Assembly: GCF_902459465.1 (NCBI RefSeq)
Contig: NC_047082.1
Location: forward strand, 9,176,001-9,240,000
DNA: 64,000 bases
Direction of reading: 5' to 3'
Source: Asterias rubens
Taxonomy: Eukaryota
Below, piece by piece: positions 19,855-44,445 of this stretch. Position 1 is the first letter of the stretch; each line of letters starts with the position of its first letter. The translations under genes and the position numbers were made by a program. The notes beneath the pieces were generated by a model. It worked only from the letters and a program-made list of their open reading frames with translations, was not told the DNA's origin and made no database searches.

Positions 19855-20130
19855 TTAAAGGCCAGGGACACTATTGGTAATTACTCAAAATAATTATTAG
19901 CATAAAACTTTACTTGGTGACGAGTAATGGGGAGAGGTTGATAGTATAAAACATACGGCTCTCTCTGAAGTGCATAGTTTTCGAGAAAGAAGTACTTTTC
20001 CACGAATTTGATTTTGAGACCTCAGATTTAGAGTTTGGAGGTCTCGAAATCAATCTAAAAGCACACAACGTCGTGTGACAATGTTTTTTTCTTCTTTCAT
20101 TATTATCTCGCAATTTTGACGACCAATTAT
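19855..20130. mobile_element. MITE family A, partial
   Basis: Left TIR after TTAA and part of the body. Confidence 0.7.
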
Positions 20131-21640: not shown

Positions 21641-23733
21641 GTCGTCGAGCATCGTCTTTTCTGGTGTAGCCTTTTGTCGAGGCCTTTGCGGACTGCTTCG
21701 CAGAGCATCACTCTCCCAAGCGACTGCACGGAAAGACCACTCGTGCGATTGGCAGCTGGACTCTCGCGGGCGTTGTCTCCAATGCTACGAAGGCCTTGAC
21801 GAAAGACTAGGGTCTGATGTGCGGGTCCGGATGGCGGACGTGACGATCGAAGCGTGACGGACATGGACTGCGTGAAACTTGTACTCATCAGTTTGCGCAT
21901 GCGATTTACAATAAATGATGGTGTAGTGTACGTGTCTAGAGAAGGGGGGGGGGGGGGGGGGGGCACTGCCGTTACCCACACAATTAAGGTCAATGTTATT
22001 GCACGAATTGTTTTGAACACTCAATCAAAATCGAGTCGAGAGTTACAAGTTTAGCTCCAAGCTGCCTTGTGTCGAGTAAAATAACGAGTTTTAAAACAGA
22101 TTTAGAACATGGGCAACGCAACGAGCGACGCAAAAGGCAAGGCAAGACGCGACGGCCGGACGGACGACGGCACGATGTGACCGCGGGCCCCCAGAGACGA
22201 CGGCGGGTATTATTAGCATGGATGTAGAACGACGCGACGCCGTATAGGGGCGCGGGGCAATATAACGACGCGCGCCGGACGACGGCAAGACGGGCAAAGC
22301 CAAAACCACTATGAAAATAACTTTGAAACCAGGCGAAGGCACAGGCGACGCGACGCACTTCTTGTCTTATCTCGTATTGTAGACCTACATTATAGTAATA
22401 AAACACTTTATGAAATGAAATTAATGCCGCTAGGTCCCCAACCGTACGTTTTGTGTTTTGCGGCGTCAAACCAAACGGCATAGTCGCAATCTGACACACT
22501 TTTTGTCGGTCGGTCATTTGCCTCATAAAGTAGTTCTATGTGCAAAATATCAAATGATTCTCGTGTTATACCAGACTAAATTCCTTCCAGCCTCGGTTTC
22601 ACCACATTAGTTCAGGAATACAAGATGGCTCCACGAGGCCGACAGAGGGGCATCATTGTCCATAGTCCCCCGTGTACAATATCAATAATAAACTGAGTAA
22701 TTGTACTAGATTGTCCTTCGGTTTCATCACATAAATTCAAATGGAAAAATACGAGATGGCTGCCATATGATGAAGGTTTGGTGACTGGGAGGCTGGCGAA
22801 ACAACGGCTTCGGCTTGGGGATCCGTTCTTTCGTCTGAAATCCTTCGTGCGCAAAACACGAGCAATAATTATTGTCATCGACACAATGCGGGGCCAAGCT
22901 AACCTGAGCCAAATCCAAAGACATCCAGTCGTTTCTGGGCTGAATGAGGTGTATTCAAAAGAGGGTGCCATCAGAAGAAGTTTAGTACACAGCTATCCAT
23001 GCTGCCAAATGGGGGACAGAATCTCCAGCACCACCCAATAATATTATTATTATTACAAATGATGACATGGTGAGTCATGGGAATTCCCCATCAAGAGAAA
23101 TGCAATATCATGCCGCGCTGTGCATCACAGCTTCACTTTTATCTTTACGGTGATCATATCAGTAAACAGACCCTGGAGGCGCTTCAGAAAATCTCATTAA
23201 TCTGGAGAAAAATTTGCAAAAGGTACGTATCAAACATTTCTTTTGTATACGCCGCCTCAACTGTTGTTGTTTTGCTGCAAATCGGATTTGTGAAAACTGT
23301 GTAAAAAAAATCTTGTTCACGCGTTTCTCAAAAGTATCATTACAATTTTGGTATTTCATACAATTGAATTGAAGTAACATCACTGTTGTTTTGCTAACAA
23401 AACGGTTGCTGGCATTGTAAGCACTTTACTCCACACATAAACTGACACCTGGTAGAAGTTTTAGATCGATCGGCCTCTCTGGGTCACGAGAGAATAATTA
23501 TTGAGAAAAAAAAAAAACGAATGTTATGGGAAAAAAAGGGAAAAGAAGACAAACGCTCACTGAGCGCAACTCCAAACGGGAAATTTGTTTTATTTGTTCC
23601 CCATCAAATTACACGACATTTCAGAAATAAAAATTTCAATAATGGATGTTATCTACTATCATCATCATTAGACCGTGTAAGCTTATGTGAATCTGTGAAC
23701 ACAGAAGAGTCTTACCAGTTTTGTAATGTTCCT

Positions 23734-24110
23734 TCAAGGGCAGTGGACACTTGGTATTCATTTACTCAATATTATTATTAGCATACAACTTTACTTGGTA
23801 ACGAGTTATGGGGAGAGGTTGATGGTATAAAACGTTGTGAGAAACGGCTCCCTCTGAAGTGACGTAGTTTTCGAGAAATAAGTAATTTTCCACGAATTTG
23901 CTTTCGAGACCTCATATATTATTTATAATTATTTTGAGGTCTCGAAATCAAGCATCTGAAAGGTGTTTTTTTCTTTCATTATTATCTCGCAACTTCGATG
24001 ACCGATTGAGCTAAAATGTTCACAGGTTTGTTATTTTATGCATTATGTTGAGATACACAAAGTGAGAAGACTGGTTTTTGACAGTTACCAATAGTGTCCA
24101 CTGTCTTTAA
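23734..24110. mobile_element. MITE family A
   Basis: TIRs and body match family A. Confidence 0.8.
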
Positions 24111-24585: not shown

Positions 24586-25102
24586 TTAAAGGCACTGGAC
24601 ACTATTGGTTATTCTCAACATAACGTTGTAGCATGAACAACTTACTTGGTAACGTGCAACGGAGAGCTGTTGATATACTTATATAAAGTATGTTTGTGAT
24701 ATGAGAAACGGCTCCCTCTTACTAAATTGTCCAGATCATGTACAATACCCGATAAACACACTGGACACTGTTGGTAATAATTGTCAAAGACCAGTCTTCT
24801 CAGTTGGTGTATCTCAACATAATATCACAAACCTGTGAAAATTTGAGCTCAAATTGGACGTCAATGAAAGAAAATATTGTGTGCTTTCAGATGCTTGATT
24901 TCGAGACCTCAAAATCTAATTATGAGGTATCTAAATCAAATTAATGGAAAATCCCCCCTTTGTTACTCGAAAAATACGTCACTTCAGAGGGAGCCATTTC
25001 TCACAATGTTTTATAATATCAACCTCTTTACTCGTTACCAAGTAAGGTTTTATGCTAATAATTATTTTGAGTAATATTACCATTAGTGTCCACTGCCTTT
25101 AA
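24586..25102. mobile_element. MITE family A: a partial copy followed by a full copy
   Basis: TIR at 24586, second copy at about 24758-25102. Confidence 0.75.
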
Positions 25103-25377: not shown

Positions 25378-26921
25378 ATGGCGGCTTACGGCGCAACTTT
25401 CAATTTGGTGTAAGTTTTGTTCACTCGACTGAAATAGTGTGTCGAGTTAGATATTACTTGGACAAACATGATGTTAAACGGCAGAACTACTGTTAGGCAT
25501 ATCGTACATGCATCCATATCCCTCACTGTCTTGAGTTGATTTACTCAGTTTGTTTTTGTGAGTTGCCTTTCTTCTTTGCGTCCTATAATGCGAAACTGTT
25601 TTTCTGAGTAGCATGAAACGACTGAAATTAAACTATACAAAAATCTACTTTTGCTGTGCACGTTTTGAGTCAGGGATTACATGGAAATACTTAAAAGCAA
25701 ACCTGTCCGGAGTTAAAAACATTCATTAACATTTTTATCAAAGTTCAAATTTGTAATTTGCATGTTTTTATCGGCACTTTAAAAACAATATTAATATGTA
25801 ATTTTTGATTTGGGAGTTGGAAGAATGAAAGTTCAGACCATAAATGTTTTGTTTGATTGTACTTTCAGTTACGAGGTGGTGGAGGAAGAGGGGCAAATAG
25901 AGCCAGCCCTAAAGAAACTCCGTGAGCCGGGTGAAGGGCTCCCTCTCTTGGCCGTCGACTTAGAGGGGGAAAAACTCAGCCGGGCAGGGGAGCTCGTTAT
26001 CCTGTCTGCTGCAACAGAGAAGCACACTTTCTTGTTTAACATCAAGAAGTTGGGATCCGGGGTGTTCGACAAAGGCCTTAGGGATCTTCTTCAGGATCCA
26101 GATCGTCAGAAGTTGATGTTTGACTGCCGCCAGGACTCAGACTGTCTCTGGCATCAGTACAGCGTCAAACTGACCAACGTACTGGACTTGCAATTGATGG
26201 AGGTAAATGTTTGTGCTTATAAGGATAATGCATGCTGACACTTGTGAAAGGGTTTGAATGGTTTTCACTTTTCTTTCTACCACCAGGCATGTTTGGTGTC
26301 TTGAAGTCTGGAATTACTTCACGTGGTTTTTTATTTGTAGAGTTTATTTCTTGACCAGAATAAACTATCTATTGACAGGTCGTTCATCGGGGTGATCACA
26401 TGAAACAGAACGCCGTTGTAGCATCGCTGGCTTACTCGTCATCCGGGTACCTCCCAAGGGTCAACGGCTTCAAGAAATGTCTCCAGAAGTACAACGTCAA
26501 AGACCATGGCATCCTTCAAGCCAAGGAGCGTGGTAGCCAGGTGATGAAACGTGAAGGGGTCTGGCTTGAGCAACCTCTGCAGAAGGCTCTTCTAGAATAC
26601 TCTGCAGCCGACGTCATGGGGTTTTACAAACTGTACGAGAAGCTGAAAAGCGTCGTGCGTCTGAACAACCACGCTTTAGTAGAGGCATCGAAGAACTACC
26701 TTGAGTTCTTCCGCTCTCGTGCTGTCCGCACCAACGATACGTTCGAGAGGAACGGGTTCGTACCTTGGCGTATTTTTCCAACCACACCGGGCACCGGGCC
26801 GATCACCACGTGCCAGAAATGCAGACAGGGTTTCCCGCGTTCTGATTTCAGGCAGAGAGGACAACAAATTTGTCCTGTCTGCGTCAAAGTCACGACGGAA
26901 GTCAACAAGGGGTGGTATTAA
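25378..26921 (+). CDS. EXD1/Egalitarian-like DEDDy 3'-5' exonuclease with C-terminal C4 zinc finger, paralog 1 (302 aa)
   Basis: join 25378-25409, 25869-26202, 26379-26921 (phases 2, 0; 909 nt). ExoI AVDLEG, ExoII MFDCRQDSDCL, ExoIII LLEYSAADV, C-terminal CQKC-x16-CPVC. Confidence 0.85.
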
Positions 26922-28624
26922 AAAAGAGCTGCGATCAACGGAAAAGTCTCAACAACGACAGGGAAAAATATAAACAGTTTTTCAAAACAAAGGTACCGTT
27001 GTTCAACCTATACATAAGCAAATTTTAGTTTGCTTGTTCAAACTGGGCAACTAGCTTTATATTATTATTAAGTATAACATAGGAAGTGTTATATTTTGTC
27101 ATGTCATAAATTGAAACCAAGGCCCAATTTCACAGAGCTGCTTAAGCACAATAAAGACGATATTAAGCGCAACAAAATAACTGCTTACCACTACTAGAAT
27201 ATGGTTACCATGTCACATGTACAACCTGTGGCTTGTATCCTGCTCATAATATCTGCTAATCAGAAATTTGTTAAGAAATGTTTTGTGCTTAAGCAGCTCT
27301 ATCAAATTGGACCCAGGGTTGGTTCAAATCTAAATTTCGACGAAACAAGCTTTTCGTGCTTTGTTTGCATGGGTGCGTTACGGACCAGGGTCAAGTCACA
27401 CAAGTAATCTTGAGAAAAAAACAAGATCAAAACGCGACTATGAGCATTTTTTTTGTGTGTTAAACAGCATAAAGATCAAAGGTTTTATGATGCTCAGACG
27501 TTAATTAATTTCAACACATTGACGAACAAATTTACAATCATGTATACAATTTTATTCCTCACTATTTGTTTAAATTAATACGTTAGTTTTGTGAAACTGA
27601 AAGTAGGATACGGAATTTATTTGGAGATGTTTACACTTTCAAGAATTAAATACCCATGCGGGTAATAAGTACTCAAATAATGACCCTTAAACGAACACGT
27701 TGCCTTGGATCGGTCGAGTTGGTCTTTGAAAAGCGTTTGTAACCGTTTGTTATAAATTGCATATGATTAGAAAGAGGTTTTAAAAGTAGAATACAATGAT
27801 CCACACAAATTTGCCTCGAAATTGCAATTTTATATAGTGGTTTAGCAGGGTTTCTAGATCTGGTCAGTCATTAATTTACACTTATTTGGGTTTCAAGACA
27901 TACAGTTTAGAATACACCAAGTGTTTATGTGCTGCAGGTCATCCTGGAGTGCCACTTCATCATCTTGATTTTTAATGACTCTATACAAGACAGTGTCATC
28001 TGCATACTGACGGAGATTAGATTGAATGCAAAATGGTAAATCAAAAGCAAAGATATTGAAAAGAATAGGTGCTAGAACAGCACCCTGTGGCACGCCAGAA
28101 TGAACTGCAGCCCAGTCAGATGATAAACCCATAAACTGAACCCGCTGTAATCTGTTTGAAAGATAAGACTTAAACCAGTGCAACATTGAGCCACAAGTAC
28201 CATCTTTATGTAATTTGTTCAAAAGAACTGTGTGACTCACGCGATCAAAAGCTTTTGACCAATCAAGAAATATAGCATCAATGCGGGGCGGTTTTGAAAC
28301 ATCAAGAGCAGTGGCCCAGCTATGATAAAGAGTTGTCAATTGAGTAACGCAAGATCTTTTAGGCAAGAAAGCTTCAAAATACTTGATTTAAAGATAATAA
28401 TAAATGTTCCATGATAATGTTGTATGTATTGGGTGAATATAGAAGGACAATAATAAAGAAGTAATTACCTGAAATGTAGAGGAATAAAACGAGACATGTT
28501 TACTGGTTGAGTCCTCTGTATCGAACGCGTCGGTGAGGGCGTATCGACTTGGTTGGCAAATTAGCATAGCAAGTGGATAAGTTACAATTGCGGTCAGTGA
28601 ATGGATGTCAGGAATGGAACTATT
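25843..28624 (+). repeat. Segmental duplication unit A (paralog-1 exons 2-3, downstream flank, MITE half, LINE part)
   Basis: Direct repeat of 31731-36160, which carries about 1.64 kb more (33713-35356). Confidence 0.9.
27826..28372 (-). mobile_element. Duplicate, further deleted copy of the same LINE RT fragment
   Basis: ORF 27893-28366 has the same RT motifs and is near-identical to 35357-35908. It has the same stop/frameshift after ...LNCMS. Confidence 0.9.
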
Positions 28625-31600
28625 CAGAGTAATTGAGTTACTTCCTTTTAGTTTTGATGTGGGTTTTTGTTTTTAATCAAGGGTTTTTGTTTTGAGAATA
28701 CGGGAATTGAAAGAACATTAAAATATGAAAATAATTTTGAGTGCAAATCAATACAGCGACGAAGACCAGATGTTCCGCCGATGACAGATTATTATCACAT
28801 CGTGTTTCATCACAGGATGGTGCTGTTGGAGCCTGGATGTGTCCAAGTTCGTGTTTAACCAAGCATTATGTAAATTATCAATAATAATTGACTAACAGAT
28901 TTAGAAAAAGTCCTTTAAACGGACAATTATTAATGAATTGGCGCCATTTTGTTCCATTTGAAGGAATAACTTTATGGTTTCTGAACTTACATGTAGGTAA
29001 TGAGCGTAGTTAGTGTTCGTCTGTTAGGCTACAGGGACCAGACTAAAAAATGTCGGCCTCTATTTTTTGTATTAATTGGTTTGCCGGTGGTTGTATAGTT
29101 TACTTTGCAATTTTTTTTTTTTTTTTTTCTACATTCATATCTTATTGACGGGACAGCTTATTCACTCTTATATTTCATATTAAATAATTTTAGGGATGAT
29201 TTTCCAAAAAATACCCATAGACCCTCCCAACAAACAAACAAAGTATATTATGTGTTTTTTTATACTCTTTAAAACATGATATGAATTAGTTTACGTCTAA
29301 AGAAAATATGGTAATAGTGTATAGCACCTTTAAAATGTTACGTGCTCAATAAAGATTCTGGAAATCCCTGAAAACTATGTTGCGCATCACTGCCTGAGAA
29401 CAGTTGATGTTGAACTTCGCACGCTTTGTTCACATAGTCGGTTTTCCCCGACATGTCGCGACGTACGCAACGCCCGTAGGACTTTCCGATAATGTGCCAG
29501 CAGGAATTAAAGTATAAAATACCATTCACGAATTTGGTCGAGCAATTTCTTCCGAGGACAGGAAAGCAAAGGTAGGTACTGAGTTACTTTACTTACTAAC
29601 TTATTATGTTAAAGTCTTTCCACCTTGCAAACCTTTCAAGTCTTCTTAATGTTTGTTAAAGATGACTGAAAAGTCTCCGGCCTAAACTGGTATCGGTATC
29701 GTGACTTTAAGAACTCGATGATTAGGTGATTTGGGTATAATAATGGGTGTACACTTCTGCGCAATGTACACTCACTCCAGTTAGTGCACATCAACCCACT
29801 AGTCGGTTTATGTCATTCATACGAACGACTCTAATGTTGGACAGAACAAAACAAAAGGTTTGAGAATAAATCAACAAATTCTTTGTAATCTGAAGAAAAG
29901 AAAATGATGTCAGTAAGCCATTAATTTTGAAGACTTTTGCTCAGTTGTGTTTGATCTTTTGTGTTTGAGACTTTGGAAATAGCTAGAACTGCCTTGCAGA
30001 GCTGTGTCGAAATGTGATTGGTGAGAAAATGTTTAATAATAGTTTATTAGTGCAACTGTTGCATATTATACGAACATCCGAAGATAAATCGATAATCTAC
30101 CAATTTGTTGTATTCCAATAAGCTGAATAAATATCGGATTAATCGATAGCTTGTATTTTTTAATAAGTAAAATACATGAGATTTATCAAAAATCTATCAG
30201 ATTTGATTTCCAAAAAAGTTGAAAAATTCAGATAAATCGATAATCTATCAAAAATTGGTTTTCTAATAAGTTAATCAATAAAATTAATCGACAATCTATA
30301 TAATAACTGGTGGTTGATTCCGTAGTTTATATCTATGGATCTCACTGCGTTGAATAGAGTGAGAGACGAGATCGTGGAGATCGATGGAGAACACACAGAG
30401 AAAGAGTCTGATTTGTCAGAGGGAAAATTGCCCGAAGGTATCGCGGAGGCAGATAGGGGTGAGAAGAGAAAATGTGGAGGTGCAGAGGCTGGACTAAGTG
30501 GTGAGTTTTTTTTTTTTTTTCTTTTAGTAAAGCAAGATGGCCGCGCTCCATCGCAAACAAATTACAAACATTTTGTTAATTGGTGTTTGCAGCTTTGCAT
30601 GGTGTAGAGAATAAGAGTAACTATAAATATAAATATGATTACACGTAGTAAACTTGCGGGCACAACCATGTGTAAAATCTCTTTTGAGGGAGTGTTGGCT
30701 CTGAAAGAACATTTTGGTATTGATATGACGAGTGGAATTTTGCGGCTGTGATCTGCAATAAGTTATTATAATGGTCGGGCTTATCTTGAAGGTCATCGAT
30801 TGCAGTTTAAAATCTATTAAGCGCTTCAAATCATAATTTTCCAGGTGAAGAGTTGGACGGCAAAAAAGACGAAAGTTCCGCTACGAAGAAACTCAAAATT
30901 GCCTCAATATCAGAAGGATTAAGGTAGGGGCCGGAATTATTTGAAGATTAAACCGTTGAGAAGCGACGAATAAATTATTTATAAAAATAATATGAAAATA
31001 CAGTTATGACAATATTTCGCATAAAGAATACATGCATACTGGCAGCCAATTCCATGAAGTTTCGCAACCATTTCGTCAGCCCATCACTAACTGTACAACA
31101 TTTTAATGATTGCGTAAGTTGTGCGCTAATTACACAACAAACTTTGCGCAAGTGGAATTATACGAAGAAGGTAACGTTTCATAAAAAAAATGGCTCCCGG
31201 CCTCTTATTTCCAGTTAAAAAAAATTGTTTCCCCTTATCATTGAGCATCTTTTAGTTCCATCGTTTGTTCAGTTGTTGAACTGAATAGCCAGTGCCGGGT
31301 GAGAGAGAGAGTCATTTGAGGCAAACTCTACATGATGGGCTGAGCATTCTCTCCAAATGTAAATGTAATGAGTGAAAAACACCCCTCTTTCCATTTCGAG
31401 TTGTCCCTCATCATATGGCTCTTTGAAAAGAGTGGGGGTTATTTCACTCTTTTAGAGGGGTTTCACTCCGGGACAGAGTGAAAAATCACTCAAAAAGATG
31501 CAAACTTCAATCTAAAATAGTGGAAGACCACTCGAAAAAGAGTTGTCCCTCATATGGCTCTTCAAAGAGTGCCTTTTCACTCTTTTGCATTTCGAGAGTT

Positions 31601-31731
31601 CATTTGTCCATCACGTTAAAGAACAAAATGATAATGTTTGAATTTGGAACTGGACAGATGGAGTTTCAGTTCTCAGTGTTTTGTTTGATTGTACTTTTAG
31701 CTACGAAGTCGTGGATTAAGAAGAGCAAATA
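28620..31731 (+). repeat. Segmental duplication unit B' (inverted copy of 38196-41205)
   Basis: Reverse complement of the paralog-3 upstream region, exons 1-3 and start of the first catalytic exon. Small indels separate the two copies. Confidence 0.9.
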
Positions 31732-32814
31732 ATGTTTTGTTTGATTGTACTTTCAGTTACGAGGTGGTGGAGGAAGAGGGGCAAATAGAGCCAGCCCTAA
31801 AGAAACTCCGTGAGCCGGGTGAAGGGCTCCCTCTCTTTGCCGTCGACTTAGAGGGGGAAAAACTCAGCCGGGCAGGGGAGCTCGTTATCCTGTCTGCTGC
31901 AACAGAGAAGCACACTTTCTTGTTCAACATCAAGAAGTTGGGACCCGGGGTGTTCGACAAAGGCCTTAGGGATCTTCTTCAGGATCCAGACCGTCAGAAG
32001 TTGATGTTTGACTGCCGCCAGGACTCAGACTGTCTCTGGCATCAGTACAGCGTCAAACTGACCAACGTACTGGACTTGCAAGTGATGGAGGTAAATGTTT
32101 ATCCTTTATAAAGGAGAATGCATGCTGACACTGGTGAAAGGTTTTGAACGGTTTTCACTTTTCTTTCTACCACCAGGGCATGTTTGGTGTCTTGAAGTCT
32201 GGAATTACTTCACGTAGTTTTTTATTTGTAGAGTTTATTTCTTGACCAGAATTAACTATATCTATTGACAGGTCGTTCATCGGGGTGATCACATGAAACA
32301 GAACGCCGTTGTAGCAATGCTGGCTTACTCGTCATCCGGGTACCTCCCAAGGGTCAACGGCTTCAAGAAATGTCTCCAGAAGTACAACGTCCAAGACCAA
32401 GGCATCCTTCAAGCCAAGGAGCGTGGTAGCCAGGTGATGAAACGTGAAGGGGTCTGGCTTGAGCAACCTCTGCAGAAGGCTCTTCTAGAATACTCTGCAG
32501 CCGACGTCATGGGGTTTTACAAACTGTACGAGAAGCTGAAAAGCGCCGTGCGTCTGAACAACCACGCCGTAGTAGAGGCATCGAAGAACTACCTCGAGTT
32601 CTTCCGCTCTCGTGCTGTCCGCACCAACGATACGTTCGAGAGGAACGGGTTCGTACCTTGGCGTATTTTTCCAACCACACCGGGCACCGGGCCGATCACC
32701 ACGTGCCAGAAATGCAGACAGGGTTTCCCGAGTTCTGATTTCAATCAGAGAGGACAACACATTTGTCCTGTCTGCGTCAAAGTCACGAAGGAAGTCAACA
32801 AGGGGTGGTATTAA
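30335..32814 (+). CDS. Chimeric EXD1-like exonuclease, paralog 2 (373 aa if spliced to the distal acceptor at 31757)
   Basis: join 30335-30500, 30845-30923 (copies of paralog-3 N-terminal exons), 31757-32090, 32272-32814 (copies of paralog-1 exons 2-3). Phases 1, 2, 0 are compatible and the ORF is open. A competing proximal acceptor at 31700 leads to TAA after 5 codons. Confidence 0.65.
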
Positions 32815-33573
32815 AAAAGAGCTGCGATCAACGGAAAAGTCTCAACAACGACAAGGAAAAATATAAACAGTTTTTCAAAACAAAGGTACCGTTGTTCAAC
32901 CTATACATAAGCAAATTTTAGTTTGCTTGTTCAAACTGGTCAACTAGCTTTATATTATTATAAAGTATAACACAGGAAGTGTTATATTTTGTCATGTCAT
33001 AAATTGAAACCAAGGCCCAATTTCACAGAGCTGCTTAAGCACATTAAAGACGATATTAAGCGCAACAAAATAACTGCTTACCACTACTAGAATATGGTTA
33101 CCATGTCACATGTACAACCTGTGGCGTGTATCCTGCTCATAATATCTGCTAATCAGAAATTTGTTAAGAAATATTTTGTGCTTAAGCAGCTCTATCAAAT
33201 TGGACCCAGGGTTGGTTCAAATCTAAATTTCGACCGAAACAAGCTGTTCGTGCTTTGTATGGGTGCATTACGGACCAGTGTCAAGTCACACAAGTAATCT
33301 TGAGAAAAAAAAAATCAAAACGCGACTGTGAGCATTATTTTTTGTGTTAAACAGCATAAAGATCAAAGGTTTAATGATGCTCAGACGTTAATTAATTTCA
33401 ACACATTGACGAACAAATTTACAATCATGTATACAATTTTATTCCTCACTATTTGTTTAAATTAATACGTTAGTTTTGTGAAACTGAAAGTAGGATACGG
33501 AAATTATTTGGAGATGTTTACACTTTCAAGAATTAAATACCCATGCGGGTAATAAGTACTCAAATAATGACCC

Positions 33574-33941
33574 TTAAACGAACACGTTGCCTTGAATCGG
33601 TCGAGTTGGTCTTTGAAAAGCGTTTGTAACCGTTTGTTATAAAATGCATATGATTAGAAAGAGGTTTTAAAAGTAGAATACAATGATCCACACAAATTTG
33701 CCTCGAAATTGCGTGGTTTTCCTTTTACTTTGCGAACTAACACGGTCGGCCATTTATGGGAGTCAAAAATTTGACTCCCATAAATGGCCGACCGTGTTAG
33801 TCGACGAGATAAAAGGAATCGTGTGGATCATTATATTCTACTTTTAAATTATCTATCAAACCATAATGCATTTTATAATAAACGGTTACACACGCTTTTC
33901 AAAGACCAACTCGACCGATCCAAGGCAACGTGTTCCTTTAA
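33574..33941. mobile_element. MITE family D
   Basis: Long palindromic TIRs and TTAA TSD. Only its left half survives in the duplicate at 27687-27825. Confidence 0.85.
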
Positions 33942-34289
33942 AACTTACTTGGTAAGAGCTGTTGATAATGTATATCATTTTCAGAAACGATTGATTTCCA
34001 AGAAACGTGGTTTTAGAGGGATTCTAAAAGATAATGATAAAATCTGAAACCCATTTCTGCATGAAACGTTTCTCAGATTGTGTAGTCCATTATGGGTGAT
34101 TCTTCCAGCGTGGACATACCGCTCTTCTAGAGTATCAGCGACATCTAACAAAATCCTTTTCAAATGTAGTTTAATTTATATAATTAACAATGTTTAAACA
34201 GTTCGGCGTCTCCCGCTATTTTTAGTATCCGATCGGCCAACATTTTTGGGCCGCACCTTAATTCAAGATGAATCTAGATTTCATGTTTT

Positions 34290-35908
34290 ATTATTTCATT
34301 TCATTTTCATTTCATTTCATTTATTAATTTCACAGGCACAAATTCAAGCACAGACAATAAGACAGAAGAAAACAAAAACATGAACATACAATACAATAAC
34401 AAAAAAAGCAGCACCCCTGAAGGATTTAAAAAAAGTAAACTAAATTACTATCGAGTTAATCTCCTGATGCCACAATTTACGAAGAGATAAAAAGGGACAT
34501 TACAGATGGACATTATTAAAACATGGCATACAGTATAAAAATATAGAACTATACAAGCAGTTAAAACTATAAAAGCCCTAATGGGCATTAATAATACAAA
34601 ATCGTTAAAAGAGAGATTCTAGTTAATTATGCAAAAGGCACTATAAATTTGAGAAATAAAAAACAGCAGCAAGGTATTTGAATGGGCAAGGCAACTAGAA
34701 AGTTACACTGTTTTGGTCAAGGGGACCTCCTCGCCAGGGACTAATAAATGATTCCTGAGGGAATTTGTGAAGGAGGATAAGCTATGGATAATTGTATCTT
34801 TAATGCAGGCCGGTAGTTCGTCCCATAATCTAGGGAATCTGTGAAAAAGAGAATGATGGGCAGCATTGGAACGAGCCCGATGATGGACAAATTTAACAGA
34901 TTCGATATGTCTACAGTTAATGGGAATTAGAGTGTCCGTGTCAATGTCAAATTTGTTATATAAACATTTAATAACAAACGTAATTGAAAGGAAATGAACC
35001 CTGTTGATTAACCTGTCAGAATATTCAATTTCATTTACAGAATCAATTAAAACCCTTCTCGGCAGACCCAAACAAAAACGGGTGAATCGCCTCTGTACCT
35101 TCTCCAGCGTTTTTTGCCGAGTCGAAAGAGCAGGGCACCAGACTGGAGCTGCGTATTCAAGTATGGGTCTGCTAATTGAGCGATAAAGTAAAGTCAGAAT
35201 GTAAGGGTTTCTAGTTTTAACTACTCTACCAATAAATCCGTTGAGTCTAGTGGCTTTGGAACTGACTTTATTAACATGTGTTTTCCAGCTTAAGTCCCTG
35301 GAGATAATAACACCCAAGTATTTGTAACTATCCACATTTTCCAAAGTGTTTTCAGCAATTTTATACAGTGGTTTAGCAGTGTTTCTAGACCTGGTCACAG
35401 TCATTAATTTACACTTATTTGGGTTTCAAGACATACAGTTTAGAATACACCAAGTGTTTATGTGCTGCAGGTCATCCTGGAGTGCCACTTCATCATCTTG
35501 ATTTTTAATGACTCTGTACAAGACAGTGTCATCTGCATACTGACGGAGATTAGATTGAATGCAAAATGGTAAATCAAAAGCAAAGATATTGAAAAGAATA
35601 GGTGCTAGAACAGCACCCTGTGGCACGCCAGAATGAACTGCAGCCCACAGTCAGATGATAAACCCATAAACTGAACCCGCTGTAATCTGTTTGAAAGATA
35701 AGACTTAAACCAGTGCAACATTGAGCCACAAGTACCATATTTATGTAATTTGTTCAAAAGAACTGTGTGACTCACGCGATCAAAAGCTTTTGACCAATCA
35801 AGAAATATAGCATCAATGCGGGGCGGTTTTGAAACATCAAGAGCAGTGGCCCAGCTATGATAAAGAGTTGTCAATTGAGGAACGCAAGATCTTTTTAGGC
35901 AAGAAAGC
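34290..35908 (-). mobile_element. 5'-truncated, frameshifted non-LTR retrotransposon (L2/CR1-group LINE) RT fragment
   Basis: RT motifs FLDWSKAFDRVSH, GVPQG, YADD, YKYLGV, RPILEYAAPVW, LEKVQRRFTR. Frameshifts near 35426 and 35640. 3' tail of (ATGAA)n type at about 34290-34325. Confidence 0.9.
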
Positions 35909-36934
35909 TTCAAAATACTTGATTTAAAGATAATAATAAATGTTCTATGATAATGTTGTATGCACTGGGTGAATATAGAAGGACAATAATAAAGAAGTAA
36001 TTACCTGAAATGTAGAGGAATAAAACGAGACATGTTTACTGGTTGAGTCCTCTGTATCGAACGCGTCGGTGAGGGCGTATCGACTTGGTTGGCAAATTAG
36101 CATAGCAAGTGGATAAGTTACAATTGCGGTCAGTGAACGGGTGCAAAGAATGGAACTATTAAGGAACACAAAAAGGGGTGCTCTGATCTATCACGTGTAT
36201 ATTATTTTAGGACTAAAACAAACCCTTTTCCAGGTGTTTGTCAGAGAATTTGTTTAGGAGTAGGTTTTTGTATTCTTTATAGACAAAGGTCTTAACACCA
36301 GAATTTGTGCCAGGAACTGTGTTTCATAACTTTTTTTTTTCTGTACGGCTATTTTTTGAACGCTCTTTCGCACTTTGCGTCTCCACTATTTTCACCATTT
36401 TGGTGGCCTTAAAAACCAACCAAGCAAAGTGTAAATTATTAATAAGAATCAAATAATATTGGTATAAAAAAGTCCTCCCAAGCAACAGTTAAGAAACGAA
36501 TGAATAACAGCCATTTATTTGACTTTAAAGGATTCTAATCGAGTCAAGAAACAAATTACCCGAATACCGATCAAACATGTACCCTATTTCCGCAAAACAC
36601 GCTTCCGTTCACGGACGAAGGCAATACATTTACGTTCGATTCTTCATCGATTATTTACAACTTTTATCGATAACTTGAATGTATTGTCTTTATGTCAAAA
36701 AAACTCGAGAATAATTGGAACCGATTTGTTTTTATGTGTTCGATAATGTTGTCTTGTATACGGGTGGAAGTATAAAAAGAATCCCAATAATTTGTATTAT
36801 TATTCACCAACCGTTTTTTTCTCGGATAATTCACGGCACCTTCGTTTTTTTTAAATTCAATCTGATGATTTTTTTTTTAGGAACTGTTCTTCTTCATTCC
36901 TCTGAGACCTTTGGAGTAATTTTTAGTTTGTTTT

Positions 36935-39604
36935 CTAAAACAAAGGGTCTTCATAATATTCGTCACATTCGAATTCACGATTCCAGTTATACTCTCTACT
37001 TTTCTGTACATCTTTCACATTTTTAACCTTCCTGCAGACTGGGCATTTCTGTACCCCTTCCCGCTTTTGGGTGGTTGTGAAGTCCGCACTGGGAAATAGG
37101 CGCTTGCAACCCACGCACTTGACTTCTGTGCTATAATAGCTCTGGAAAATACGCCAGGGCAGGAATGGGTTCCCTTCGTAATTATCGTAGGAACGGTCTT
37201 CTTTCAATCGGTAGAAATCGACATATCTATTCGAAACATCCCGCAGTAAATTCAGAACGTTCCCTGTTTCGCTCAGTACTTTGAACAACCGCAGCATGCC
37301 GATTACATCGGCTGCAGCATACCGTAGAAATGACTTGCGAAGAGGTCGGGTCAACCACACACCATCTGAGTGACTTTCCAATCCTTTCTTTGCCTTGATG
37401 AGATCTTCATCTTTGACGTAGTCTTCGAGACATTTCTGAAAGCCGAGAACTCTTGGAACATCTAGAACTCGTTTGTTTGTACGAAGGTTCAACTGTTGAT
37501 GGGTTGATGCATCACCTCGGTGGATGACCTGCAGTGATTTGTGTTGAATATAAAAACACGGTTGACACAATTATTATGAAAAACCTTCAGTGAAACACCT
37601 TTCATGGCAGTATGGAAGGGGCACACTGTCTTCTTGGGCACATTGGGTTGAAACAAAATTGCTTGTTATAAAATGAATACGGTTGGAAAGAAGTTTTAAA
37701 AAGTAGAACATAATGATAAAGTCCCCCGAAATAGTGGTTTTCCTTTTCTTACTTCGTGAACAGTCGCGGTCCGCCGCGGCCGTTTTGTTGAACCAATGTT
37801 CGGCGTTTATAATCAAAAGAACACACAAGGGTCCCGTTTCATTTACATGAGTGTTACTAACTGTATTGTAAGTTCTTTAAGAAACAATTTGTTTTTGTTA
37901 CCTCCATCAATTGCAAGTCCAGCACATTGGTCAGTTTGACGTTGTATTTATGCCAGAGACAGTCCGAGTCCTGACGGCAGTCAAACATCAACTTCTGACG
38001 GTCCGGATCCTGAAGAAGGTCCATCAGGCCTTTGTCGAACACCTTGGATCCCAACGTCTTGATGTCGAACAAGAACGTGTCATTCTCCGTTGCAACGGAC
38101 ACGATGGCGAGCTCACCCTTCCGGTTGAGTTTCTCCCCCTCTAAGTCGACGGCCAAGAGAGGGAGTCCTTTACGGAGTTTCTCAAGGGCTGGCTCTATTT
38201 GCTCTTCTTCATCCACGACTTCGTAGCTAAAAGTACAATCAAACAAAACACTGAGAACTGAAACTCCATCTGTCCAGTTCCAAATTCAAACATTATCATT
38301 ATGTTCTTTAACGTGATGGACAAATGAACTCTCGAAATGCAAAAGAGTGAAAAGGCACTCTTTGAAGAGCCATATGAGGGACAACTCTTTTTCGAGTGAT
38401 CTTCCACTATTTTAGATTGAAGTTTGCATCTTTTTGAGTGATTTTTCACTCTGTCCCGGAGTGAAACCCCTCTAAAAGAGTGAAATAACCACCACTCTTT
38501 TCAAAGAGCCATATGATGAGTGACAACTCGAAATGGAAAGAGTGGTTGTTTTTCACTCATTACAATATTTACATTTAGAGAGAATGCTCAGCCCATCATG
38601 TGGAGTTTGCCTCAAATGACTCTCTATTCAGTTCAACAACTGAACAAACGATGGAACTAAAAGATGCCCAATGATAAGGGGAAACAATTTTTTTAAACTG
38701 GAAATAAGAGGCCGGGAGCCATTTTTTTTATGAAACGTTACCTTCTTCGTATAATTCCACTTGCGCAAAGTTTGTTGTGTAATTAGCGCACAACTTACGC
38801 AATCATTAAAATGTTGTACAGTTAGTGATGGGCTGACGAAATGGTTGCGAAACTTCATGGAATTGGCTGCCAGTATGCATGTATTCTTTAGGCGAAATAT
38901 TGTCATAACTGTATTTTCATATTATTATCATAAATAATTTATTCGTCGCTTCTCAACGGTTTAATCTTCAAATAATTCCGGCCCCTACCTTAATCCTTCT
39001 GATGTTGAGGCAATTTTGAGTTTCTTCGTAGCGGAACTTTCGTCTTTTTTGCCGCCCAACTCTTCACCTGGAAAATTATGATTTGAAGCGCTTACATGTT
39101 AAACTGCAATCATGACCTTCAAGATAAGCCCGACCATTATAATAACTTTTTGCAGATCACAGCCGCAAAATTCCACTCGTCATATCAATAATAAAATGTT
39201 CTTTCAGAGCCAACACTCCCTCAAAAGAGATTTTACACATGGCTGTGCCCGCAAGTTTACTACGTGTAATCATATTTATATTTTATAGTCTCTTATTCTC
39301 TACACCTTGTTAAGCTGCAAACACCATTTAACAAAATGTTTGTAATTTGATTGCGATGGAGCGCGGCCATCTTGCTTTAGTCAAAAAAAAAAAAAAAAAA
39401 AAACTCACCACTTGGTCCAGCCTCCGCACCTCCACATTTTCTCTTTTCACCCCTCTCTGCCTCTGCGACACCTTCGGGCAATTTTCCCTCTGACAAATCA
39501 GACTCTTTCTCTGTGTGTTCTCCATCGATCACGATCTCCACGGAGCTGTTGATCTCGCCATACACCTTCTCGTCTCTCACTCTATTCAACGCAGTGAGAT
39601 CCAT
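36935..39604 (-). CDS. EXD1/Egalitarian-like DEDDy 3'-5' exonuclease with acidic/basic N-terminal extension and C4 zinc finger, paralog 3 (397 aa)
   Basis: join(complement) 39409-39604, 38989-39067, 37902-38226, 36935-37528 (1194 nt; phases 1, 2, 0). Motifs AVDLEG, MFDCRQDSDCL, FLRYAAADV, CVGC-x20-CPVC. A non-coding upstream exon has its donor at 40289. Confidence 0.85.
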
Positions 39605-41205
39605 AGATATAAACTACGGAATCAACCACCAGTTATTATATAGATTGTCGATTAATTTTATTGATCAACTTATTAGAAAACCAATTTTTGATAGATTATC
39701 AATTTATCTGAATTTTTCAACTTTTTTGGAAATCAAATCTGATAGATTTTTGATAAATCTCATGTATTTTACTTATTGAAAAATACAAACTATCGATTAA
39801 TCCGATATTTATTCAGCTTATTGGAATACAACACATTGGTAGATTATCGATTTATCTTCGGATGTTCGTATAATATGCAACAGTTGCACTAATAAACTAT
39901 TATTAAACATTTTCTCACCAATCACATTTCCACACAGTTCTGTAAGGCAGTTCTAGCTATTTCCAAAGTCTCAAACACAAAAGATCAAACACAACTGAGC
40001 AAAAGTCTTGAAAATTACTGGCTTACTGACATCATTTTCTTTTCTTCAGATTACAAAGAATTTGTTGATTTATTCTCAAACCTTTCGTTTTGTTCTGTCC
40101 AACATTAGAGTCGTTCGTATGAATGGCATAAACCGACTAGTGGGTTGATGTGCACTAACTGGAGTGAGTGTACATTGCGCAGAAGTGTACACCCATTATT
40201 GTACCCAAATCACCTAACCATCGAGTTCTTAAAATCACGATACCGATACCAGTTTAGGCCGGAGACTTCCCAGTCATCTCAGTACCTACCTTTGCTTTCC
40301 TGTCCTCGGAAGAAATTGCTCGACCAAATTCGTGAATGGTATTTTATACTTTTATTTCCTGCTGGCACATTATCGGAAAGTTCTACAGGCGTTGCGTACG
40401 TCGCTACGTGTCGGGGAAAACCGACTATGTGAACAAAGCGTGCGAAGTTCAACATCAACTGTTCTCAGCCAGTGCTGCGCAACATAGTTTTCAGGGATTT
40501 CCAGAATCTATATTGAGCACGTAACATTTTAAAGGTGCTATACACTATTGCCATATTTTCTTTAGACGTAAACTAATTCATATCATGTTTTAAAGAGTAT
40601 AAAAAACACATAATATACTTTGTTTGTTTGTTGAGGAGGGTCTATGGGTATTTGTTGGAAAATCATCCCTATATTTATTTGATATGAAATATAGAGGGAA
40701 TAAGCTGTACCGTCATATGAATGTAGAAAACAATAAAAAAGAAATTGCAAAGTAAACTATACAACCACTGGCAAACCAATTAATACCAAAGATAGAGGCC
40801 GACATGTTTTAGTCTGGTCCCTGTAGCTTAACAGACGAACACTAACTACGCTCATTACCTACATGTATGTTCAGAAACCATAAAATCATTCCTTCAAATG
40901 GAACAAAATGGCGCCAATTCATTAATAATTGTCGGTTTAACGGACTTTTTCTAAATCTGTTATTCAATTATTATTGATAATTTAAACACGAATTTGGACA
41001 CATCCAGGCTCCAACAGCACAATCCTGTGATGAAACACGGTGTGATATTAATATGTCATCGGCGGAACATCTGGTCTTCGTCGCTGTATTGATTTGCACT
41101 CAAAATATTATTTTCATATTTTATTGTTCTTTCAATTCCCGTATTCTCAAAAAAACAAAACCCCACATCAAAACTAAAAGGAAGTAACACAATTACTCTG
41201 AATAG
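38196..41205 (-). repeat. Segmental duplication unit B (template of B')
   Basis: Reverse complement matches 28620-31731. Confidence 0.9.
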
Positions 41206-41539: not shown

Positions 41540-43474
41540 ATGGATACCAACTCGACCTCAATGACAACTGTACCATCCAGTGAGCAACTCAGTAGAGACG
41601 GTAGTGTTTGTGAGTATACGAATCTCAATGATGCTTTAAATTGCAATTACAATACAACCACGTATATAGTGATATATGATGGCAACAACGGGAGGCTGGT
41701 AGTGCAGGAATCGGTTTGAGATGTTGGATGAATAATAGATCGGGGGAAACCACCGTTATTATTATATAGACATAATATACAGCGACGTAAAAACCAATCC
41801 ATCATTAGCTCATCAAAACCGTTTGAGACTCAATCCAGAGTTACTAAAAAAAACAAAAACAAAAAAACCAAAAAACTAATCAAAACCAATCAACAAAATG
41901 AATAATATTAAACAAACATTGAGCAACTGAATTTTGTACCAGGGATTGCTTTGTAACTGAACAACCCAACAATTATTTATAGAATATTAATTTTGTCTTT
42001 TACCCAAACACCGATGTGTGTTAGCACTGTATACTCAGTACTTTTCCGAGTGCTGTGAACAAATATCACAGGCTATCAACCGGGTGGGATTCGAACCCAC
42101 GACTCTTGCAATTCTAGAGCAGTGTCTTACCAACTAGACTACCGAGATTGCCCGGTAGCTAGAGGCAGTTCGAATCCTATTTTTAACATCTATTATATAA
42201 TTTAACATCTATTATGTAAATTATTGATAGGGTTAGTAGTTTGCACGTCAGCATGTACGGATTTCGCCAATCAAGTGTGTTCCTTTTTTAAACTCGACTA
42301 CTGGTGCATTTTTTTTTTCTCGTTCTGATTTATCCTCGCATTCAAATAAATTCGTTTGATTGTAACTACTGTTGTTATTTTCTTATACAGTTGTGGTTGC
42401 ATTTATTTCACTGTGTGTTGGACTCATCAACTCTCTGGTCATTGTCCTCACGATCATGTGGTTATACAGACATTATAAAGTAAGGTAAGATGTTAATATT
42501 CTACATGGATCGACCATCTAGAACAGCCTCAACATCTGACTTCGTACTTCGTCTGTCTTGAGCCTCAGTTCCCGTCCATGGTTTTAACTATGTTCTAACC
42601 AAATTCAATATTTTTTTGCAAACGTAAAATACCTCCTTGGTTGATCCACAAATGGGAGACTTTGAGGTGCTAGGTGGCAACAGACTTACCTGGTACATTT
42701 CCATTGTTTATGTAGTTCTGAGCGTGCGCACATTATCGAGAACAATTGATTTTACCTGGTAGGTCTGCTGCCACCAAGCGTCCTGAAAGTCTCCCATTCA
42801 ACGTTTCGTTTGAACAGTTGTGTGACACTGTTAAAATCTGTGGCCATCTGTTTTCGTTTTGCATTTGTTTGGCTTCCCATCTTTTTTATGAAGTACAACT
42901 ATTTTTCGAGTGGTCTTCCACTCTTTTAGATTGAAGTTTGCATCTTTTGAGTGAAACTGTCCTGGAGTGAAACCCCTTTAAAAGGGTGAAATAACCACCA
43001 GTCTTTTTGAAGAGCCATATGAGGGACAGCTCGAAATGTAAAGAGTGGTGTTTTTCACTCTTTTACATTTAGAGGATAGTTTTCCAACCGCGGTTGGCAA
43101 AAACTCGGGCTAAAGACATTGCATGGTCCAACGAGTGGGGTTATAATCTAGTAAGATAATTGTCCCAATTTTAATCAATTATTTACTGCAGAAGCGAAAA
43201 CGACCAATCAAGAAAGATCAAGACAGGCAAACCAAGCAAAGTCCTCTCCATTGATTACAAGATGACGTCCCTGGATATGATGACTGCTGATGAATACTGC
43301 CCTCAACGGTACACTTCATCCACGAATGAACGCATGGCCAGCACCGGGCAACAAGTGGGGCACACGGACCGACAAGTTGAAATGGATAATGGTGCCTTTA
43401 CGGTGGATCCGGAAAGCGTGCAGTTTGAACCACCGGATCACGTCAATATGCACCCATCGAGGGGGACGTTATAG
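41540..43474 (+). CDS. Small orphan single-pass (type III-like) membrane protein, about 148 aa
   Basis: join 41540-41609, 42391-42484, 43192-43474. Donors GTGAGT and GTAAGA, acceptors TTATACAG and TTACTGCAG, phases 1 and 2 compatible. TM segment FVVAFISLCVGLINSLVIVLTIMWLY is followed by RHYKVR. Confidence 0.6.
42000..42180 (-). mobile_element. tRNA-derived SINE
   Basis: Reverse complement contains TAGTCTAGTTGG and GGTTCGAATCCC; homologous to 8970-9165. Confidence 0.75.
42651..42798. mobile_element. Hairpin MITE (GGAGACTTT ends); second copy at 53403-53547
   Basis: About 45-bp inverted arms; two dispersed copies. Confidence 0.75.
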
Positions 43475-44260
43475 CCTGAACATCTGACGTCACAAATTGA
43501 CGTGACACGGAGAACAACTGAACAATGGATCCACTTTACAAAGATAGTCCTCACTTTAGGACTCTAAGGTCAAGGAGTAATTATGGCTAGTCATCCTACC
43601 TCCAGTCCTAGCTCGAGAAAAGACTAGTCTTAACTCTTTGTAAAATACATCACAGTCTCCACTTACAATCTGAACATGTTTTAGTTCTACATTCTTTACT
43701 TGTACACTTGGCTGACGATGCATGGAGGGCTCTGGCATGAATGAATGGCAGTCAACTTGTAGAGATGGGTGTGGAGAGGGTGTGAGCGGGTGGGGGGGGG
43801 GGGGCACACATCTCAATATGTCTTCCTAGGCTAGTCTGCTTCCATGATGACTTGGGATTTGACAACCCGAAAATTGAACTGAAATTCCGAACGCATAGGA
43901 CAAAAACATGTATTATAAATTACTTTCTTCCATTTTTATTATTATCTTCGATAATTATGCTCTCTTATTATGTTTTTATCAATATTATTTATATACCCTG
44001 TAACAGCAGTATTTCTATGGCATGCAAGTGCATGTCATTTTTTAAAGCGAACATTCTTTGGCAAAACTTTGAACCTTGGCAATTATAATACATGCACTAG
44101 TTAAATTAAGCTTAACTAAATTATCATAAAACTACTAAGCACCTTCTGCAGTATAACAAAGATAGAGATAAGACATTTGATGCCTGTGATACCGTAGAAA
44201 GAAATGGTTTCATTGATTTGTGATGACTGAAATTATTAGCATAAAACGGGTTGAAACAGC

Positions 44261-44445
44261 TTAAAGGGATAAGTTGCCTTGGATCGGGCGAGTTTGTCTT
44301 TGAAAAGTGTTTGAAGTTATAAAATACAATTATGATTAGAAAGATGTTTTAAAAGTAGAATATAACGATCCACCCAAATATGCCTCAAAATTACTTGTTG
44401 ACTCCATAAAATGGCCGAGAGTGTTAGTTCGCAAAGTCCCTTTAA
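44261..44445. mobile_element. MITE family D, internally deleted
   Basis: Starts TTAAAGGGATAAGTTGCCTTGGATCGG and ends CCCTTTAA. Confidence 0.7.

Follow-up and report, generated by a model that had tools for sequence, protein, structure and literature searches.

A P3-to-P1 chimeric exonuclease gene at an inverted duplication in the starfish Asterias rubens, and an isomeric counterpart in Asterias amurensis

Known inversion-duplications and the layout of the Asterias rubens locus

The duplication-normal-inverted duplication (DUP-NML-INV/DUP), described at human Xq22/PLP1, consists of one distal-distal and one proximal-proximal junction between two duplicated segments, the junctions being mediated by microhomology or by oppositely oriented repeats (PMC6902434). 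Three structures fit the same junction pair: an inverted distal segment flanked on both sides by the proximal segment (isomer 1), the converse, in which an inverted proximal segment is flanked by copies of the distal one (isomer 2), and one in which all that lies between the outer copies is inverted (isomer 3) (PMC6902434). In human cases oppositely oriented repeats mediate one junction and microhomology the other (PMC6902434). Here we describe a locus of this architecture in the starfish Asterias rubens, within a stretch of 64,000 nucleotides (nt) from assembly GCF_902459465.1 (NC_047082.1, positions 9,176,001-9,240,000, forward strand), hereafter called the window. The locus holds three genes for EXD1-like DEDD-type 3'-5' exonucleases with a C-terminal Cys-rich motif, which we call P1, X and P3, and X carries the 5' exons of P3 in front of the catalytic and zinc-finger exons of P1.

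The duplication-inverted triplication-duplication (DUP-TRP/INV-DUP) of MECP2/PLP1 resembles the starfish locus in that inverted homology reverses synthesis and a second, microhomology junction resolves it, and in that the loci are recurrence-prone, with one junction constrained and the other variable (PMC6902434 and general background). Unlike that class, nothing is triplicated in A. rubens, and the segment between the duplicated ones (C) is single-copy. A third relative is found among Drosophila chimeric duplicates such as jingwei, new genes that arose by duplication and exon shuffling. As in those chimeras, one parent of X supplied the 5' exons and regulatory region and the other the catalytic exons, and both parents are retained, but the Asterias parents are tail-to-tail paralogs, whose fusion came about through neither retroposition nor simple tandem duplication and required an inversion-duplication.

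All positions given are those of the window, the pieces of the locus cover 25,378-41,205, and the layout was established by a repeat search and by blastn of the window against itself. Divergence figures count substitutions only, over ungapped columns. The segments, their junctions and a long interspersed nuclear element (LINE) that lies among them are as follows.

25843-28627, plus strand: segment A, with the P1 intron tail, catalytic exon, zinc-finger exon and a 3' flank that holds a LINE remnant
28620-28624, no strand: junction 1, with CTATT microhomology, between the end of A and the distal end of inverted B
28620-31731, plus strand: segment B', the P3 5' region copied in inverted orientation
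31731, no strand: junction 2, where the proximal end of inverted B is joined to the proximal end of A with a 1-nt overlap
31731-36163, plus strand: segment A', with a P1-type intron tail, the catalytic and zinc-finger exons of X and the 3' flank
34292-35900, minus strand: 5'-truncated LINE (RVT_1) with an (ATTTC)n tail, part of it also in A; its site is empty in the A. amurensis copy a1
36164-38195, minus strand: segment C, single-copy, with the P3 zinc-finger exon and most of the P3 catalytic exon
38196-41205, minus strand: segment B, the P3 5' region with exon 2, exon 1 and an alternative first exon

Self-comparison gives the order A, B', A', C, B along the window, with B' inverted relative to B. 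Segment A matches A' in two blocks, 25843-27825 against 31731-33712 (97.2% identity) and 27824-28627 against 35355-36163 (97.5%), and B' matches inverted B over 28620-29583 (41205-40278) and 29660-31731 (40279-38196), with gapped identities of 91.6-94.6%. In substitutions, A and A' differ by about 2.5%, and B' and B by 2.0% proximally and by 3.7% over their middle and distal parts, and each of the four copies carries substitutions and indels of its own. Chance cannot explain kilobase-long matches at such identity. Missing from A, at 27824/27825, are 1643 bp of A' (33713-35354); this deletion has GC microhomology, removes part of the LINE and begins inside the A copy of a palindromic repeat. 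Palindromic elements of about 360 bp, resembling miniature inverted-repeat transposable elements (MITEs), lie at 18165-18526 and 33573-33941 and match each other in both orientations, with partial copies at 27686-27826 and 44257-44392.

Junction 1 joins the end of A (equivalent to 36160) to the distal end of B (41205), the letters being of A' type up to ...GGAACTATT and of B type from CTATTCAGAG..., with the 5 bp CTATT (28620-28624) common to both. The junction sequence occurs a single time in the 417.6-Mb assembly, and therefore there is no alternative haplotig. Junction 2 joins the proximal end of B (38196) to the proximal end of A (25843), such that B' stops 31 nt into the P3-type catalytic exon and A' resumes 25 nt before the P1-type acceptor. 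The join is 56 bp out of register within the paralogous exon, so that about 56 bp of homeologous sequence is tandemly doubled and two acceptors are present, at 31700|31701 and 31756|31757. An origin of this junction by non-allelic homologous recombination (NAHR) between the paralogous exons was considered and is excluded by the 56-bp misregister together with the 1-bp overlap.

The resulting structure agrees with the human class in each of its structural elements. Two segments (A and B) are present twice around one that is present once (C), one of the duplicates is inverted (B', flanked by the direct copies of A, is B in reverse complement), one junction is distal-distal and the other proximal-proximal, and the junctions bear 5 bp of microhomology (CTATT) in the one case and 1 bp at the edge of a 56-bp homeologous block of inverted paralogous exons in the other. 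An earlier sequence-only reading of this DNA had proposed the segment order, the DUP-NML-INV/DUP class, the CTATT microhomology and a switch from inside the first catalytic exon of P3 back to the end of the P1 intron; the self-comparison bears out the order, both junction claims hold when examined at base level, and A. rubens can be assigned to isomer 1. The likeness to Xq22/PLP1 therefore extends to the duplicated segments that flank a single-copy one, with one of them inverted, and to distal-end and proximal-end junctions with microhomology or oppositely oriented homology, and two of the three isomers occur in Asterias, one in each of the two species compared here (PMC6902434). The starfish case differs from the human one in its scale, which is kilobases rather than hundreds of kilobases to megabases, in belonging to a wild invertebrate species, where it is common if not fixed, instead of arising de novo as a disease allele, in that its inverted homology is made up of paralogous exons and not of Alu, LINE or low-copy repeats, and in having produced an expressed in-frame fusion gene.

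Our preferred reading, to which we assign a probability of about 0.78, is that in the A. rubens lineage a DUP-NML-INV/DUP duplication affected the convergent genes P1 (plus strand) and P3 (minus strand), and that this made X. Judged by the junction signatures, the best-fitting mechanism would be a two-switch event of the fork stalling and template switching or microhomology-mediated break-induced replication type (FoSTeS/MMBIR). The body of P1 (A) would have been duplicated in direct orientation and an inverted copy of the P3 5' region (B') set between the two copies, with two template switches during replicative repair joining the distal ends at junction 1 and the proximal ends at junction 2. 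The LINE insertion would have preceded the duplication, and the loss of 1643 bp from A would have followed it. As an outcome, P1 would have retained its own first exon and promoter and P3 would have stayed unchanged, and the new gene X would consist of a P3-type leader and an N-terminus of 81 amino acids (aa) spliced to P1-type catalytic and zinc-finger exons.

The chimeric gene, its parents and its transcripts

Gene models were guided by the A. amurensis protein P0151 and by a 302-aa gene called in A. amurensis. All open reading frames (ORFs) of P1, X and P3 are intact and all introns are GT-AG. The genes and the elements of X are listed here.

25378-25409 / 25869-26202 / 26379-26921, plus strand: P1, 302 aa, with its catalytic exon at 25869-26202 and its zinc-finger exon at 26379-26921
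25378-25409, plus strand: P1 exon 1, encoding MAAYGATFNL plus 2 nt, in unique upstream sequence (U) outside the duplicated segment
30335-30500 / 30845-30923 / 31757-32090 / 32272-32814, plus strand: X, 373 aa, with its catalytic exon at 31757-32090 and its zinc-finger exon at 32272-32814
28572-29571, plus strand: transcribed leader of X, at least 1 kb, with a donor at about 29571 spliced to about 30326; its homolog in P3 isoform X2 is the alternative first exon
30335-30500, plus strand: X coding exon 1, with the ATG, acidic, with KRK and a 30-nt in-frame deletion relative to P3 exon 1
30845-30923, plus strand: X coding exon 2, with KKLK
31701-31731, plus strand: stub of the P3 catalytic exon behind the duplicated acceptor, with a B'-specific TAA at 31717-31719
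39604-39409 / 39067-38989 / 38226-37902 / 37528-36935, minus strand: P3, 397 aa, with an alternative first exon at 40288-40455

The first exon of P1 is 100% identical to that of the A. amurensis 302-aa gene. It lies upstream of A, and A' is consequently without it, the start codon of X being supplied by B'. The A. rubens protein P0152 (EXD1-like isoform X2) matches the minus strand at 40455-40288, 39068-38991 and 38228-37899 with 100% identity and at 37534-36938 with 99%, so that P3 is an annotated gene. This isoform starts in the alternative first exon (40288-40455, minus strand) with an ORF that begins MLNFARF and has no homolog, and its start may be an annotation artefact; the counterpart of that exon in X (29407-29573, plus strand) lies within the long non-coding leader.

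With P0151 as a guide, the B' exons of X are recognized as the N-terminal exons of P3. Coding exons 1 and 2 contribute 166 and 79 nt, or 245 nt together, which ends in phase 2, and acceptor 31757 is for this reason in frame and yields an intact ORF of 373 codons whose first 81 residues are acidic and carry the KRK and KKLK patches. Use of acceptor 31701 would give SYEVVD followed by the B'-specific TAA, and hence a truncated protein. Neither the X nor the P1 protein of A. rubens was among the matches in protein searches, and a protein search with the A' zinc-finger exon returned only ORF fragments from metagenome contigs, the best being P0200, whose 2.8-kb ENA contig might extend across junction 2.

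The catalytic exons match Pfam PF01612 (3'-5' exonuclease family), and searches of protein libraries and clusters returned proteins named 'piRNA biogenesis protein EXD1-like' from A. amurensis (P0003, P0151) and other starfish. The best match among sequences in the PDB is Bombyx EXD1 (5fis/5fiq, E 1e-14, over the exonuclease-like fold), with 7c42 (a CCHC-domain exonuclease), Egalitarian and EXD2 matching about equally well. The starfish proteins share with EXD1, a piRNA factor of Bombyx and mouse (PMC4712191), the exonuclease-like fold related to PF01612 as well as the name given by NCBI. EXD1 acts in the PET complex, with TDRD12 and a PIWI protein as partners. Unlike Bombyx EXD1, they keep the Exo motif I D-x-E (AVDLEGE, opposite AVSGDGA with S-G-D in Bombyx) and have a C-terminal CxxC...CxxC motif. 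The D-x-E, RQDSD and YxxxD motifs, read by eye, are all present in P1, X and P3, and the loss of catalytic acidic residues typical of EXD1 was accordingly not seen in these three proteins. Nor was the N-terminal Lsm-like domain of EXD1 found, since Pfam reports only PF01612 in P0151, P0152, P0001 and P0157. By sequence, the starfish proteins are best placed in the EXD1/Egalitarian-like branch of PF01612 exonucleases, from which two defining features of EXD1 itself are missing. A literature search for Asterias together with EXD1 found no paper.

Evidence that X exists and is transcribed comes from Logan contigs of four public runs, from four studies with three organism labels, placed on 27800-33000 (runs X1 and X6 are DNA, and X3 and X7 are RNA). 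Each difference between a contig and the window was compared with the paralogous copy to assign the contig to B' or B and to A' or A, and nearly all of the differing letters proved to be the B copy placed on B' or the A copy placed on A'. Contigs specific to B' are present in all four runs.

28757-28951 and 28997-29257: run X1 (DNA), records 3 and 4, with 0-1 differences against 22-31 expected for B
28708-29017 and 28997-29579: run X6 (DNA), records 19 and 20, with 0-1 differences against 22-31 expected for B
28575-29569: run X3 (RNA), record 10, with 1 difference against 77 expected for B
28572-29369: run X7 (RNA), record 25, with 1 difference against 70 expected for B

The two RNA records reach 45-48 nt to the left of junction 1 and thereby bridge it, a record being counted as bridging by the tool when it has 31 nt on its shorter side. 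In run X1 the word depth of the B'-specific contigs (28757-29257) is about 150, against about 250-280 in their neighbours, which could reflect heterozygous single-nucleotide polymorphisms or a heterozygous structural variant; contig depth is unreliable for deciding between these and was not used for copy number or zygosity.

Spliced RNA follows the gene model of X. GT..AG joints at 29569->30324 (cut +2), landing just upstream of the ATG at 30335, and at 32088->32270 are present in both X3 and X7. The chimeric joint itself, 30921->31755, equally written 30923|31757 (cut +2), is GT..AG and occurs in X3 at depth 79 in one contig. Such a splice could not form in cis without the rearrangement, as P3 and P1 are encoded on opposite strands. 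Record 14 of X3 covers 32270-32730 together with 97 nt of the catalytic exon and is of A' type, with 0 differences against 8 expected for A. Sequence of P1 exon 1 is found on loose ends at 31757 in X3 and X7, that is, spliced to the catalytic exon, showing that P1 is expressed alongside X, and in X3 the expression depth of X is of the same order as that of P1. X is therefore transcribed, with acceptor 31757 used in some transcripts at least, and these encode the intact 373-aa protein.

The sequence-only reading had described X as a gene with both promoter and N-terminus swapped, with P3 N-terminal exons in frame on P1 catalytic and zinc-finger exons, and had predicted an RNA junction from 30923 to 31757. 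The in-frame join was confirmed by the 373-codon ORF and the predicted junction was found in run X3, so that the exchange of the N-terminus stands. The exchange of the promoter remains a proposal, as the leader RNA contigs extend from A-derived sequence across junction 1 into B'.

The locus in Asterias amurensis and the weighing of alternatives

The window was compared with the A. amurensis locus around P0151 (L009, CP134971.1:12974534-12997202). In the orientation of the window, this locus contains the upstream sequence U, a copy of P1 (a1, 302 aa), C and a copy of P3 (b3), contiguous with one another; an ancestral layout of A'-C-B type, which the sequence-only reading had expected in a relative, is thus present as U-A-C-B. 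Next comes a2, a P1-type copy in inverted orientation that corresponds to A' 34130->31733 and is fused to the distal end of b3; beyond a2 the P3 5' region occurs a second time, also inverted, as b2, which runs off the end of the locus. This layout, A-C-B-invA-B, is a second isomer of the same class, and it gives A. amurensis a P3-to-P1 chimera of its own, inverted and on the other side of P3.

L009:1-4700 (CP134971.1:12974534-12979233): A. amurensis chimera, with exon 2 at 204-282, catalytic exon at 1051-1375 and zinc-finger exon at 1556-2098

The ORF of this chimera is open from exon 2 onward and stops one codon earlier than in the other copies, and the chimera is absent from the genes called in L009. 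It has no 56-bp stub. Its catalytic exon resembles P3 over roughly its first two thirds and P1 near the 3' end; the change from one to the other is in register, and from the sequence a homology-driven exchange is plausible there. At the other A. amurensis junction the breakpoint on the a side corresponds to A' 34130 instead of 36160, and the one on the b side falls only about 10-15 bp inward of that in A. rubens. Also in A. amurensis, the P3 upstream region in b3 has a 4.9-kb insertion (L009:4690-9577) that is absent from both A. rubens copies and holds a copy of the palindromic MITE-like element. The isomeric and differently broken P3-to-P1 counterpart in A. amurensis is new. When scaled to the divergence between the two species, the divergence of A/A' within A. 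rubens comes to 0.82 and that of the three B/B' parts to 0.76-0.77, near-equal values that are consistent with one event without proving it.

Since their duplication, the exons of X have kept their frame. The duplicated exons comprise 1122 coding nt, in which the only indel is the in-frame one of 30 nt in the first coding exon of X and no frameshift is present; the 4628 non-coding nt have 26 indels, 21 of which are not a multiple of three. The neutral expectation would be about 5.1 frameshifts for the pairs (P ~0.006) and about 2.5 for one lineage alone (P ~0.08). In the zinc-finger exon, X holds the ancestral residue at almost every variable site, and the P1 copy (26379-26921, against 32272-32814 in X) has about 8 lineage-specific replacements and 1 synonymous change, the codon comparison with A. 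amurensis P1 using this exon only. These figures suggest that the parent copy P1 may be evolving under relaxed constraint or new selection. The same copy, with its native promoter, has also lost the 1643 bp of 3' flank, while that of the chimera is near ancestral.

Several observations weigh against the reading we prefer. Junction 2 is bridged by none of the displayed DNA contigs and is supported by the spliced RNA contig and the assembly. The 30923|31757 splice appears in one run only, with 28 nt on the shorter side, just under the 31-nt rule, and its contig has C at 30908 where the B' of the reference has T; the C is B-type and ancestral, so that B' would have to be polymorphic here. Acceptor 31701, the duplicated one, leads to a stop and may compete with 31757; no joint to 31701 is among those listed in the four runs, an absence that is weakly informative in that such transcripts would probably be degraded. 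Substitution density is about equal in coding (2.6%) and non-coding (2.7%) sequence and the ratio of replacements to synonymous changes in the zinc-finger exon is about 14:5, from which it follows that constraint on the protein sequence is weak. Finally, the isomeric structure of A. amurensis with its own chimera allows an older shared origin, and the history goes beyond a single private event.

On how many events the two species record, the data are divided. One answer, which falls only a little short of even odds and is a variant of our preferred reading as regards origin, is that the convergent paralogous catalytic exons act as inverted homology that has set off this class of rearrangement more than once, and that each species made its own chimera after speciation. 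All four breakpoints differ between the species, and the copies cluster by species, by 12 substitutions and 3 indels against none in the b segment and by 8 substitutions and 4 indels against 4 substitutions in the a segment. The LINE is at the same site in both A copies of A. rubens and the a1 site of A. amurensis is cleanly empty, which sets the order as speciation, then LINE insertion, then the A. rubens duplication. The A. amurensis junctions in addition fit the combination of repeat and microhomology seen in human cases well (PMC6902434). Less easily accommodated by independent origins are the B-side breakpoints, which are only 10-15 bp apart, the four ortholog-like sites in the a segment, and the timing, as both duplications would have to fall within the earliest third of the interval since the species diverged. 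The dating is blurred further by the high heterozygosity that is common among marine invertebrates.

The other answer, well below even odds though still substantial, is one older event before or around the split, from which the isomers A-invB-A-C-B (A. rubens) and A-C-B-invA-B (A. amurensis) would have been derived. These isomers interconvert by two inversions through homologous recombination between inverted copies, and gene conversion together with an A. amurensis deletion across junction 1 would have altered the breakpoints and homogenised the copies within each species. A P3-to-P1 chimera is indeed found in both species, whose layouts correspond exactly to two of the class's three isomers (PMC6902434). 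The near-coincident B-side breakpoints of junction 1 lie in genome-unique sequence, where weak inverted repeats only, and no transposable element boundary or strong hairpin, were found. The tree of the a copies is nearly a star, with a copy divergence of 2.5-2.9% against 2.6-3.5% between species, and four sites pair A' of A. rubens with a2 of A. amurensis and A with a1, where about 0.2 would be expected from parallel hits. A single older event has to contend, however, with two junctions that both differ, the A. amurensis junction 2 being in register in the 3' third of the catalytic exon and without the 56-bp stub and its junction 1 using the equivalent of A' 34130 instead of 36160, with informative characters that group the copies by species, and with a 1.6-kb LINE that would need to have been copied between paralogs by gene conversion. 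With the duplication of P1 and P3 in the A. rubens lineage still the preferred reading for X, we tentatively suggest, at less than an even chance, that the tail-to-tail exonuclease paralogs may be a recurrent generator of inversion-duplications, with parallel birth of P3-to-P1 genes in two species and their ORFs kept.

It is also possible, though we consider it doubtful, that X is a transcribed by-product without a function of its own, a young duplicate drifting to pseudogenisation in which the productive isoform is incidental. The equal substitution densities and a replacement-to-synonymous ratio that is about neutral would suit this, as would the duplicated acceptor, which precedes the productive one by 56 nt and is followed by an in-frame TAA, and the finding of the productive splice in only one run. 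Its difficulties are that the 373-codon ORF is intact after about 2.5% divergence, that the sole coding indel is in frame and no frameshift has accumulated (P ~0.08 when one lineage is considered), that the zinc-finger exon of X is the more conserved of the two A. rubens copies, and that X reaches an expression depth of the same order as P1 in X3. On these grounds X appears to be a young gene, expressed and with its frame preserved, on which constraint is weak or shifting, and one hypothesis is that its grafted N-terminus changes localisation or regulation. An assembly artefact, in which two haplotypes or collapsed paralogs were wrongly stitched together, is very improbable, for although the copies are 96-98% alike, a range in which assemblers can err, junction 2 has no bridging contig among the displayed DNA contigs and the B'-specific X1 contigs have about half the depth of their neighbours, the structure held against the mis-assembly that the sequence-only reading had named as its refutation, with B'-specific sequence in four runs of four studies, junction 1 bridged in two independent RNA runs with at most one mismatch, spliced RNA linking a B'-type exon to a P1-type exon, and private substitutions and indels in each of A, A', B and B'.

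Other repeats in the window and the significance of the locus

Elsewhere in the window there is a family of elements of about 390 bp that resemble short interspersed nuclear elements (SINEs), with at least 10 copies of 72-92% identity in both orientations, which is also found in the A. amurensis locus. Copies lie at 3291-3675, 5810-6196, 12105-12442, 19855-20128, 23733-24110, 24753-25102, 56831-57229, 58981-59358 and 60340-60644. Two Rfam tRNA matches, at 42081-42144 (minus strand, 43 bits) and 8988-9044 (plus strand, 36 bits), are truncated relative to the model and may be the heads of tRNA-derived repeats and not genes. A direct repeat of about 900 bp (49555-50446 and 51303-52204, 89.8% identity, 1.75 kb apart) is unrelated to the exonuclease cluster, and near it 128 N (48108-48235) mark an assembly gap or masked sequence.

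The locus is a well-resolved new case of known processes, namely complex inversion-duplication and the birth of a chimeric gene by duplication, and no principle is overturned by it. Complex template-switch rearrangements are known mainly as human disease alleles, and base-resolved natural cases that persist in a species with an expressed in-frame fusion gene are rare. The Asterias locus offers both junctions at base resolution with intact parent genes beside the chimera, an internal clock in the succession of LINE insertion, duplication and deletion, and a sister species with both the unrearranged adjacency and a second chimera in an isomeric layout. It makes testable whether such structures recur or flip between isomers, how fast sequence is exchanged among the copies, and what effect a new N-terminus and leader have on the expression or localisation of a DEDD exonuclease.

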